64,000 bases of DNA from positions 1,065,226-1,129,225 of the forward strand of contig BDGG01000013.1 in the NCBI GenBank assembly GCA_001949185.1, in the 5' to 3' direction. Both the position numbers and the translations under genes were made by a program. This stretch comes from Ramazzottius varieornatus. Taxonomy: Eukaryota > Animalia > Tardigrada. Shown here one piece after another: positions 59,426-62,179 of this stretch (its first letter is position 1; each line of letters opens with the position of its first letter). The notes beneath the pieces were generated by a model, which saw only the letters and a list, made by a program, of their open reading frames with translations, was not told the DNA's origin and searched no databases.

Positions 59426-59711
59426 TGCAAAACTCTTCGTAGAAAACAGACATATAAACGTTTTTCCGCGAACACAATCATAATCCCTGCAGGTCTAATG
59501 AATTACTAAGCTGATGGTGAACAGTTCCAAACAACGACCACAGCTCGGTCCAGCCATTGTTATTATATTCTTTCAGCGATAAGAAATACACTGCTATGCG
59601 AAAACTTTTCAAGTTTTGTACATGACGCACCCGCTAAGTGAAAACCATCACAGAGAACCGTGAATGGAATAACATTAGTCTTCGCTCCAGACACAGTCTG
59701 AAACAAGACTG

Positions 59712-59743
59712 ATAACAACAATAACAACAATAACAACAACAAC
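59712..59743. repeat. (AAC/AAT)n microsatellite
   Basis: ataacaacaataacaacaataacaacaacaac. Confidence 0.7.
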
Positions 59744-59969
59744 GAAATATTTGAGGAAATGAGCCGCATAAAAAATCATTCCACTCCTTCGGAGAAACAA
59801 GTCGAACATGGCTCGACTAAGTCATAGAAAAATTTCTATAAAAATTTCGGCGGGGAATTAAGTTCAAAATGAGATACTTCAGCGTCATGAAACGACTAAC
59901 AATAAACGATTCAAGAAAAATATAGCAAAAATGTAACACGTCCTACTGCTTTTTGGCTCTCCGATAGGC

Positions 59970-61511
59970 TCAGCTGACGTTTCGCTTCTCCGGTGGAACG
60001 TACTCCATGTCCAGCGCTCTGAAGATATCTTCCTCGCTGTTGATCTTGACCGTACCTTCAGACAAGAAAAAGCAAAGTTTGCCAATCACCCGAAAGATTC
60101 GTCTACTGCTCGTATCAAGTACTCTACCTTCATTTCCGGTGTCGCCTTCGTCGTTCCGACTTTTATGCAGTCCATACTCGTTCAGCTTGTACCCTTTCGC
60201 CTTTGCTTTCGAGTTCAACTCTTGGATGAACAAGTCATTGCCCGTCCATTTCAGAATAGCCGAGTAATACTGGCTTTCAGCGTACAGATACAGCGCCAAG
60301 TAATGATGGTCCTCACCTTTCCCTCCATGGTTTCCATTCTTTGCTTTCTTCTTCGCCGGTCCATCTTCCTCTTCACCATCTTCTTCTTCCCCATCTTTCT
60401 GTCCACCACTGCTGGACGACGACATAATACCTTTCAGCCTGTTCTCGCCTTGAGTCATGACTTCCACCAACGTGCCGTTCTTCTTCAGAGTGTCCACGAC
60501 TTCAGCCATCAGCTCCTTGCTGCTTTCGCGGGACCTGTGGGTGACGACGGCGACAATTTCAAGAATGGTGTCATCTTTGCGGCGGTATGCACCACAGAGT
60601 GTCACTTCGAAGTCCTTGTGGAGTTTTTTCAGTTGACTTTCCATCGATTCCTCAATCTGAAACAGCAATCCACGTTAAAGTCAGCCATCCAACGGGCGAA
60701 AAGCGGCATATCAATACAGGTCCGTGCCGTACTGAGGGCTATGCCGTGTATCTGAACGTACACTGAATAAGCATATGACGTCACTACGCCAATTGAAGAA
60801 CCACCCCGCTCATCACGATGTACACAAGAAAACTGACGTCATGCTTCACAGCCCTGCAGCGGCTAAGCAACGCATGACGTCAATAGACAGCTAAAATCAT
60901 CGTTCGACAACACCAAACTGAACTGAACGCGGTGACTTCACTAATACTCTCAAACGGATTTCGGGGTGCTAAATCGGGCCCGAAATGGATACCTTCTTTG
61001 CTCGCGCTCGGGAAATGGGTTTCTCGATGTCGTCCAAGTACCTCAGCGCGATCTGTTGCGATTCCGTCAGCTTGTCCGAGTGCTTCTTCAGGTCTTCGAT
61101 GGTGTGGATGCCTTGTTTCTTCAGCTCCCTCGCTCGAGCAATCCCGATGCCTGGCACGCGCGATAGCTCACCCACTTCTTGCGCGTCTTCGTCGTGTTCA
61201 GCTTCCTCCTGCTTCTCGGTCTTTCCACGAACGAGGAATTCGTCTATCTGCGCAGCGATGCCTTCACCGATGCCGGGAAACTCTTGGGCTTCTTTGCCAC
61301 TCTTGACGCGATGCTTGTGTTCGGCTAAGATCTGTGCTGCTTTGCGGTAAGCGATGCTCTTGAACATTTCTTTGTCAGCGTTCTTCTCGTGATCAGCTAG
61401 TTCGAGTAATAAATCGCAGATGTCCTTGTTGGGATTGTCTCGAGCAGCTTCAGTCTCGTCGCGCTTGCGCTTGTTGGATTCAGCGGCGGTGGATTCCTTC
61501 TCGTCACTCAT
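59970..61511 (-). CDS. DNA polymerase beta-like (family X) protein lacking catalytic residues, 3 exons
   Basis: Colinear with Pol beta: ELADHEKN, AYRKAA, HhH FPGIG and VPGIG, CGAYRR, WTGN, GYKLNEY, SEEDIFRALDMEYVPPEKR; exons ~61511-60993, 60658-60129, 60058-59970. Confidence 0.9.
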
Positions 61512-62179
61512 TCTTCCCGCAGTTGGTCCACTCTTTTCGATGCAGTCTTGAAGTAGAGTCGTCCTGTGAGCTCCCGACACCTGCAAAGCATTGGAAATAC
61601 CGAATTAGCGGTTGAGAGATCAGCCGGACAGCGAGGACGGTCACGAGAGATGCCGTGTTCCTTAGCCTTTATTTTTCCCAAGCGCGGGCCATGCCGTACT
61701 CTCGTCTCCCACTTCTCTGTCTCAGTGATAGGCTGACAACCGAAATTTTTCAAGGTTTTCTGCAAGGCCGTGCTAAAACCCCAAACCCCTGTCATAATTT
61801 GTAAGAGGGAATCGGAAGACGAGAGTTTAGCACCTCGGCCAGGACCCCCGGCGCCCGCGCTTGTGATTTTCCCCAGTTTTCTACGTTGGGAAAATACTCG
61901 TAGAGACTTCTGGAAGTGATGAAGTGAGCTGTCGAAGTTGATTGATTGTTGATTTGTTTACTTTCTGGGACTGGAATAAATGACTCGAATCAAGAATCAA
62001 TCAAGAACACCGTGGGAAAGTTTTCCACTCCCTGAATCCTGACCCTGAGTTTTCTAAACTTTTCTTGAAGCTCCGGGTAGTTCTCCTCAGTTGCTTTACC
62101 TTCTGCAGAAATCCGTGATCGCATCCTCTGGTAAAATACCCTGACGTTGTGACGGTTGTGCTCCTTGTATTTTCCGATC

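Follow-up and report, generated by a model that had tools for sequence, protein, structure and literature searches.

An expressed polymerase beta descendant of the tardigrade Ramazzottius varieornatus is likely a pseudo-polymerase

Does the DNA polymerase beta (Pol beta) gene of a tardigrade still encode a polymerase? The radiation and desiccation tolerance of tardigrades is now largely ascribed to DNA repair genes, a set taken to include POLB (PMC6652013; bioRxiv 10.1101/2023.09.07.556677). RvY_16412 has been reported as the single POLB of Ramazzottius varieornatus, and nHd.2.3.1.t08957 as the POLB of Hypsibius exemplaris (Kamilari et al. 2019, PMC6652013). We analyzed a 64,000-nucleotide stretch of contig 13 of the 55.8-Mb R. 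varieornatus genome (positions 1065226-1129225; here, the window), in which RvY_16412 is the product of a three-exon minus-strand gene at 59970-61511. A reading of the bare sequence (the original prediction) had proposed that this gene encodes an intact Pol beta from which both the polymerase and the 5'-deoxyribose phosphate (dRP) lyase active sites are gone, and had guessed, correctly, that its host was a tardigrade. From the comparisons described below, we consider it likely that RvY_16412 is a Pol beta descendant whose polymerase activity was lost in an ancestor shared by the parachelan eutardigrades at least, and that it has since been selected as an expressed, folded, non-polymerizing pseudo-polymerase.

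Pol beta holds its two catalytic metals with three aspartates, D190, D192, and D256. We read these and other key columns in 40 aligned family X polymerase (PolX) sequences, 35 of which are not from tardigrades, and checked the codons against the window. In RvY_16412 the three places are taken by glutamate, valine, and alanine. Because aspartate occupies them in 33, 35, and 33, respectively, of the 35 non-tardigrade sequences, the substitution pattern is, in this alignment, beyond chance. The residues that surround the triad or contact the incoming nucleotide and the template have changed as well. In RvY_16412 the replacements are S180 to A, G189 to L, R149 to P, R254 to Y, Y271 to K, F272 to W, N279 to I, and R283 to N; across the tardigrade sequences they are S180 to A or T, G189 to L, S, or R, R149 to P, R254 to Y, M, or L, R258 to Y, C, or H, Y271 to K or H, F272 to W, S275 to N, N279 to I, M, or V, and R283 to N or S. 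Only R183 is kept in RvY_16412 among S180, R183, G189, R149, Y271, F272, N279, and R283, while R182, R183, T273, G274, and D276 are retained. The replacement motif around positions 271 to 283 is itself conserved among tardigrades, which speaks for a new constraint rather than for drift.

The damage is also concentrated in the catalytic subdomain. Of the sites with at least 90% conservation in canonical Pol beta, only 11 of 27 persist in the palm. The 8-kDa domain (23 of 31), the subdomain that follows it (14 of 21), and the final subdomain (17 of 26) have each kept a larger share. Every substitution listed in the original prediction (D190>E, D192>V, D256>A, R254>Y, S180>A, Y271>K, N279>I, R283>N, R149>P, K68>G, and K72>Q) is present in the codons, and its claim of a lost polymerase site is borne out by the triad, the contact replacements, and the poor survival of the palm relative to the 8-kDa domain. 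These features strongly suggest that polymerase chemistry has been specifically lost in RvY_16412. Partly degenerate triads were also seen in two other Pol beta-type proteins, P0133 (Euglena longa EP00668_P036933) and P0250 (ENA), which carry E or S at the place of D190 and N at that of D256 while keeping D192; active-site erosion may therefore have happened more than once.

By sequence and by predicted fold, RvY_16412 is a Pol beta-type family X polymerase by descent. Its Pfam domain set consists of HHH_8, DNA_pol_lambd_f, DNA_pol_B_palm, and DNA_pol_B_thumb, with no BRCT domain. Exon 1 matched HHH_8 at 1.1e-20 and DNA_pol_lambd_f at 7.1e-14; exon 2 matched DNA_pol_B_palm weakly (36 bits) and the thumb at 36.7 bits, the latter reaching 68 bits with exon 3 included. 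Against solved structures, the N-terminal half matched rat and human Pol beta at 3.6e-37, Pol mu at 4.8e-10, and Pol lambda at 4.7e-08, with residues 21 to 169 aligning to rat Pol beta without a gap. The C-terminal half alone scored about equally against Pol beta and Pol lambda (2.5e-13 versus 3.9e-13), implying that the palm has drifted strongly.

An AlphaFold2 model built from the 40-sequence alignment reached a mean predicted local distance difference test score (pLDDT) of 87.6 and a predicted template modeling score of 0.81. Its low-confidence parts are residues 1 to 22, 253 to 289, and approximately 341 to 350, with a pLDDT of 55 to 69 over the loop at 253 to 289. The best 50 Foldseek matches were all human or rat Pol beta, closed ternary complexes foremost, and the template modeling (TM) score to human Pol beta was 0.87 (target-normalized) over approximately 355 columns. 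These structures included the D256A and D256E mutant complexes of Pol beta (4jwn and 4jwm); the XRCC1 complexes 3k75 and 3lqc were among the matches of the two protein halves to solved structures. Both helix-hairpin-helix motifs, G80-I-G82 and G121-I-G123, are invariant in the alignment, and Pfam HHH_5 was also matched. Thus, the profile alignment and the structure prediction that had been proposed as checks agree with the expected Pol beta-type family X membership and preserved fold, and the 40-sequence alignment confirms that both motifs, K35, and Y39 are kept.

The gene behind this protein is intact and transcribed. The database entry for RvY_16412 (P0001, 377 amino acids [aa]) was first returned when the long exon 2 open frame served as a homologue query, and it is piecewise identical to the exon translations in the order exon 1, exon 2, one bridging glycine, exon 3. 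Full-length analyses used P0001, and single exons were searched separately. Approximately 0.7 of the sampled words of 59900-61600 were present in 15 sequencing runs from four named studies, which is the value expected from the exons and untranslated regions. When one run from each study was compared with 59500-62000, each gave one contig reaching from approximately 59551 to 61581-61859, and all four contigs skipped both predicted introns exactly, with zero base differences from the window. Given that spliced contigs come from RNA only, RvY_16412 is transcribed and processed as modeled, and given the lack of any base difference, its unusual codons do not stem from misassembly of the window. The contigs report on splicing, not on expression level, and they place intron 2 at 60053-60124, where the cut position can slide by 3. 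The intact, spliceable three-exon frame of the original prediction therefore held up, with 377 open codons and introns removed exactly in transcripts from four studies. RvY_16412 shares two features with pseudoenzymes, namely, clear homology to an active enzyme with loss of the catalytic residues and expression, here as spliced RNA.

Table 1. Features of the RvY_16412 gene, with positions in the window. Residue places refer to Pol beta numbering on the left of each replacement and to RvY_16412 numbering on the right.
Feature	Position	Strand	Remarks
5' untranslated region	61512-61859	(-)	Longest extent seen: run X6 contig to 61859; other three stop at 61581-61710
Exon 1	60993-61511	(-)	173 codons; N-terminal tail with KRKR motif, 8-kDa (lyase) domain, second helix-hairpin-helix subdomain; boundary backed by transcript contigs
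G84 through Q88	61248-61262	(-)	Places of K68 and the Schiff-base lysine K72; alignment and codons
K68 to G84	61260-61262	(-)	Codon
K72 to Q88	61248-61250	(-)	Q only in Ramazzottius lineage
Intron 1	60657-60992	(-)	336 nt, GT..AG; absent from one contig per run, four runs
Exon 2	60128-60656	(-)	176 codons plus 1 base; palm with degenerate active site, disordered charged loop (residues 253-289), start of last subdomain
E206-I207-V208	60552-60560	(-)	Places of D190-M191-D192; alignment and codons
D190 to E206	60558-60560	(-)	E in all four tardigrade sequences covering the site
D192 to V208	60552-60554	(-)	V or I in four tardigrade sequences
D256 to A294	60294-60296	(-)	Tardigrade sequences A, L, A, E
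K309 through N321	60213-60251	(-)	Places of Y271, F272, S275, N279, R283; nucleotide and template minor-groove contacts
Intron 2	60056-60127	(-)	72 nt, GT..AG, in frame, without stop codon; spliced out in 4 of 4 contigs
Exon 3	59970-60055	(-)	C-terminal 27 codons and stop codon at 59970-59972
3' untranslated region	59551-59969	(-)	From transcript contig extent

Orthologs from related species, the search for which had also been proposed, show the same polymerase-site losses in Paramacrobiotus metropolitanus and in the sequences P0002 and P0003. The P. metropolitanus protein (P0270, XP_055351650.1, 395 aa) is 53% identical to RvY_16412 and reads E/V/L at the triad, with K at the place of K72. 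P0002 and P0283, which lie on one ENA contig (72 to 85% identity), read E/V/A with Q at that place; P0003 and P0286, on one Logan contig (47 to 54% identity), read E/I/E with K. P0134, a Logan sequence covering the N-terminal part only (48% identity), has K at the K72 place, the triad being outside its coverage. The closest relative, P0006 and P0004 on one Logan contig of 2505 nt (92 to 95% identity), has Q at the K72 place and G at 206, with the rest out of frame. The H. exemplaris protein (BV898_12491/OQV13285.1) was not returned by name in the homologue searches, and P0003 with P0286, or P0134, may be that protein. A metagenome scan gave 99 matching stretches, none of them a relative.

A maximum-likelihood tree united seven tardigrade rows in a single clade (support, 100/100), whose stem measures 0.99 changes per site. 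This clade joined the short Pol beta-type proteins (92/84), apart from the long PolX outgroup (500 to 700 aa). The named animal Pol betas formed a clade that did not include it, an expected outcome for so long a branch. Within the clade, the proteins have diverged much as working Pol betas do: identity between R. varieornatus and P. metropolitanus is 0.63, 0.56, 0.40, and 0.58 by domain, versus means of 0.58, 0.63, 0.38, and 0.59 among 14 canonical Pol betas. The folded parts of these two proteins are 57 to 59% identical with at most 2 gap columns, compared to 19% identity and 10 gap columns in the loop at 253 to 289. Likewise, the folded parts of RvY_16412 and the P0002/P0283 relative are 80 to 84% identical with zero gaps, and the loop has 9 gap columns. 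Open frames are retained in lineages down to 48 to 53% identity. A conserved folded core with insertions and deletions confined to a disordered loop points to an old, selected pseudo-polymerase and not to a decaying gene. The protein-level signs agree with one another in suggesting that RvY_16412 may be under purifying selection; the frameshift in P0004 speaks against it.

The lyase site has a different history. Its predicted loss stands for R. varieornatus, in which both K72 and K68 are replaced, and does not extend to tardigrades in common: the place of K72 is Q in P0001, P0006, and P0283 only, and K in P. metropolitanus and two others (P0270, P0286, and P0134). K35, Y39, and K84 are kept in RvY_16412, and K60 has become Q, K68 G, and K72 Q. 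Since loss of the polymerase site is common to the tardigrade lineages and loss of K72 is restricted to Ramazzottius, the two losses were not simultaneous. On this distribution of residues, the polymerase site was lost before the Ramazzottius-Paramacrobiotus split, and K72 later, in the Ramazzottius lineage only. The targeted loss of both chemistries put forward in the original prediction is thus correct in that both sites are altered in Ramazzottius, and incorrect in that they were not lost together.

Several observations weigh against a selected pseudo-polymerase that binds DNA. The 5'-phosphate pocket of R. varieornatus retains one of its four lysines, K60, K68, and K72 having been replaced. 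The net charge of its 8-kDa domain is -3, compared to +1 to +6 in 14 canonical Pol betas, and that of the following subdomain is -4, compared to -1 to +5; the whole protein has a net charge of -14, and its DNA-binding half is down by approximately 7 positive charges. In addition, the near relative P0004 has G rather than E at 206 and a frameshift in a poly-Ser run after residue ~253, which reflects a real lesion or else a mistake in assembly. If the frameshift is real, the gene would be dispensable in that lineage. Given such strong acidity and the lost positive charges, a DNA-binding role is not assured, although the kept helix-hairpin-helix motifs and the overall cleft are in favor of a putative one.

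Partner binding may be affected as well. At the place of the hydrophobic loop through which mammalian Pol beta binds XRCC1, tardigrades have a charged stretch, modeled with low confidence, where canonical invertebrate Pol betas are hydrophobic. The candidate roles in shielding gaps and scaffolding XRCC1 that had been suggested for this protein are partly weakened by its charge and by this loop replacement. The disordered charged loop at 253 to 289 was also weighed as a counterpart of loop 1 in TdT and Pol mu. We rejected this idea, as the canonical Pol betas P0125, P0139, and P0157 have inserts there too and loop 1 of TdT lies in a different hairpin.

If RvY_16412 does not polymerize, which enzyme fills repair gaps? 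The R. varieornatus genome has four palm-domain loci and three 8-kDa-domain loci, and a survey of these loci returned no second Pol beta-type gene. The separate, intact POLB paralog for which a search had been suggested is therefore missing, and intact genes of the Pol lambda type are present on contigs 1 and 2. The gene on contig 1 (6.92 Mb) resembles Pol lambda, with DxD and the third Asp intact and the lyase lysine kept. The Pol lambda-type gene on contig 2 (3.11 Mb; locus L002, G000:C2:3109855-3113061) has an intact triad, H for the lyase lysine, and a GW motif like that of Pol mu and TdT. These genes share the superfamily and the catalytic-core domain set of RvY_16412 and differ in keeping the DxD and third Asp that it has lost. 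The contig 2 gene may be RvPolX, the R. varieornatus protein with terminal-transferase activity (Law et al. 2024). PMC13252658, which cites this characterization, numbers RvPolX residues 513 and 522, so that RvPolX is longer than the 377-aa RvY_16412.

Two further loci were noted in this survey. Locus L003 (G000:C13:1544843-1547992, at 1.546 Mb), 420 kb from RvY_16412, seems to duplicate part of the contig 1 Pol lambda-type gene; it has palm and thumb pieces only, with no 8-kDa match, and the adjoining open frame looks like a transposase. The XRCC1 gene lies at L008 (G000:C1:1944006-1947302), where its N-terminal domain (contig 1 at 1945506) is split by introns and followed by a very long disordered stretch rich in lysine and glutamate.

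The order of events that we propose begins with the loss of nucleotide transfer by Pol beta in an ancestor common to, at minimum, the parachelan eutardigrades; selection would afterwards have retained an expressed, folded, non-polymerizing protein. Gap filling in base excision repair (BER) would have passed to the contig 1 Pol lambda-type gene, with its triad and lyase lysine kept, or to replicative polymerases. Since K72 persists outside Ramazzottius, the ancestral form, though dead as a polymerase, may still have had dRP lyase activity, and a lyase-only role is plausible in those other tardigrades. In Ramazzottius, where K72 is Q, the protein would have neither chemistry and would serve as a subunit that binds DNA or partner proteins.

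The evidence could also be read otherwise. RvY_16412 itself could be a lyase-only repair enzyme that no longer polymerizes and still removes 5'-deoxyribose phosphate in BER, with a different lysine, such as K84 or K35 in the 8-kDa domain, doing the work in Ramazzottius. In mouse cells, protection against alkylation damage comes from the lyase activity of Pol beta and not from its polymerase activity; P. metropolitanus and two further tardigrade sequences retain K72; K35, Y39, and K84 are kept in all of these; and the 8-kDa domain is the best conserved part of the protein, with 23 of 31 canonical positions surviving. We nevertheless regard this as unlikely, as K72, K68, and K60 are all replaced in Ramazzottius, the domain carries its net charge of -3 there, and the contig 1 Pol lambda-type gene could supply the activity through its own lyase lysine. 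The same Ramazzottius-specific change from K72 to Q, the G at 206 and frameshift in the near relative P0004, and the unusual acidity of the protein could instead mean that, after the old polymerase loss, whatever function remained was recently lost in this lineage and the open frame is a relic. Such decay is improbable in light of 377 of 377 open codons, both introns correctly spliced in four studies, and a confident AlphaFold2 model. Moreover, the 72 to 85% identical relative (P0002 and P0283) is open across the same region and differs from RvY_16412 by gaps in the loop (9 columns) and none in its folded parts (80 to 84% identical).

It is harder still to see RvY_16412 as an active nucleotidyltransferase that holds its metals through E206 and other acidic residues, such as the DD in RRKDD, as had been raised as a possible objection. 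E206 is a carboxylate kept in four lineages, and acidic residues do stand five to six positions upstream of it. However, the upstream pair is variable (KDD, HEA, QDE, and GEE in the four lineages), and canonical enzymes often have E at the upstream place too. Every tardigrade has V or I at the second carboxylate place, where 35 of 35 other sequences carry Asp; the third place varies among A, L, and E, the contacts to the triphosphate and base are replaced as well, and E206 itself is G in one relative. We therefore judge an alternative metal site to be very improbable and favor a long-retained pseudo-polymerase.

How does such a protein compare with known systems? Like animal POLB, RvY_16412 has a four-subdomain architecture without BRCT and a similar length, and it is 35 to 41% identical to insect, oyster, and annelid Pol beta. 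It differs in lacking the three catalytic aspartates, in its acidic 8-kDa domain, and in a charged, disordered insert of 37 residues where a loop connects the last palm strands. Pol epsilon carries, in its C-terminal half, a dead second polymerase module that is kept as a structural part. This module resembles RvY_16412 in having retained the polymerase fold for a noncatalytic use after losing its catalytic carboxylates; it is, however, a family B domain inside an active holoenzyme, whereas RvY_16412 is a free-standing family X protein and the product of the sole Pol beta-type gene.

Ecdysozoan lineages have repeatedly come to live without Pol beta gap filling, as POLB is absent from Drosophila melanogaster, Caenorhabditis elegans, and the heterotardigrade Echiniscoides (Kamilari et al. 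2019, PMC6652013). In contrast to these lineages, the tardigrade gene studied here was not deleted and persisted long after its chemistry was gone, an argument for a second, noncatalytic use. Besides keeping or deleting, this would be a third evolutionary outcome for ecdysozoan POLB.

The "POLB" of tardigrade repair studies is, to judge from these residues, probably not a working polymerase. In Escherichia coli, H. exemplaris POLB gave better survival after 2,180 Gy (Clark-Hachtel et al., bioRxiv 10.1101/2023.09.07.556677); the BER genes that the same study names as induced by radiation in H. exemplaris do not include POLB. The H. exemplaris POLB protein (BV898_12491) was detected by 4 peptides and was not induced (Anoud et al., PMC11233135, supplement file 7). 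We found no mention of an inactivated tardigrade POLB in the literature searched on tardigrade polymerase beta and polymerase beta pseudoenzymes, nor RvY_16412 by name in the main texts searched or in the supplements of the UV time-series study and the eLife study. We speculate, with more doubt than conviction, that eutardigrades run BER and single-strand-break repair without any Pol beta chemistry, and that H. exemplaris POLB is the same inert protein, a noncatalytic, polymerase-derived protection or adaptor factor of a new type rather than a repair enzyme. If so, pathway reconstructions for tardigrades need a different gap-filling enzyme, and the protection of bacteria by tardigrade POLB needs a nonenzymatic explanation. 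Pol beta would also acquire a natural separation-of-function variant, conserved over a long time, from which its noncatalytic roles could be learned.

Finally, intron 2 was considered as a decayed duplicate of exon 3, and this was rejected because the DNA score of 13 shows no excess similarity over the shuffled mean of 13.7. The peptide obtained by reading through intron 2 aligns with the C-terminal segment of human Pol lambda. Downstream of the coding region, an (AAC/AAT) microsatellite lies at approximately 59709-59750, within the 3' untranslated region of RvY_16412.

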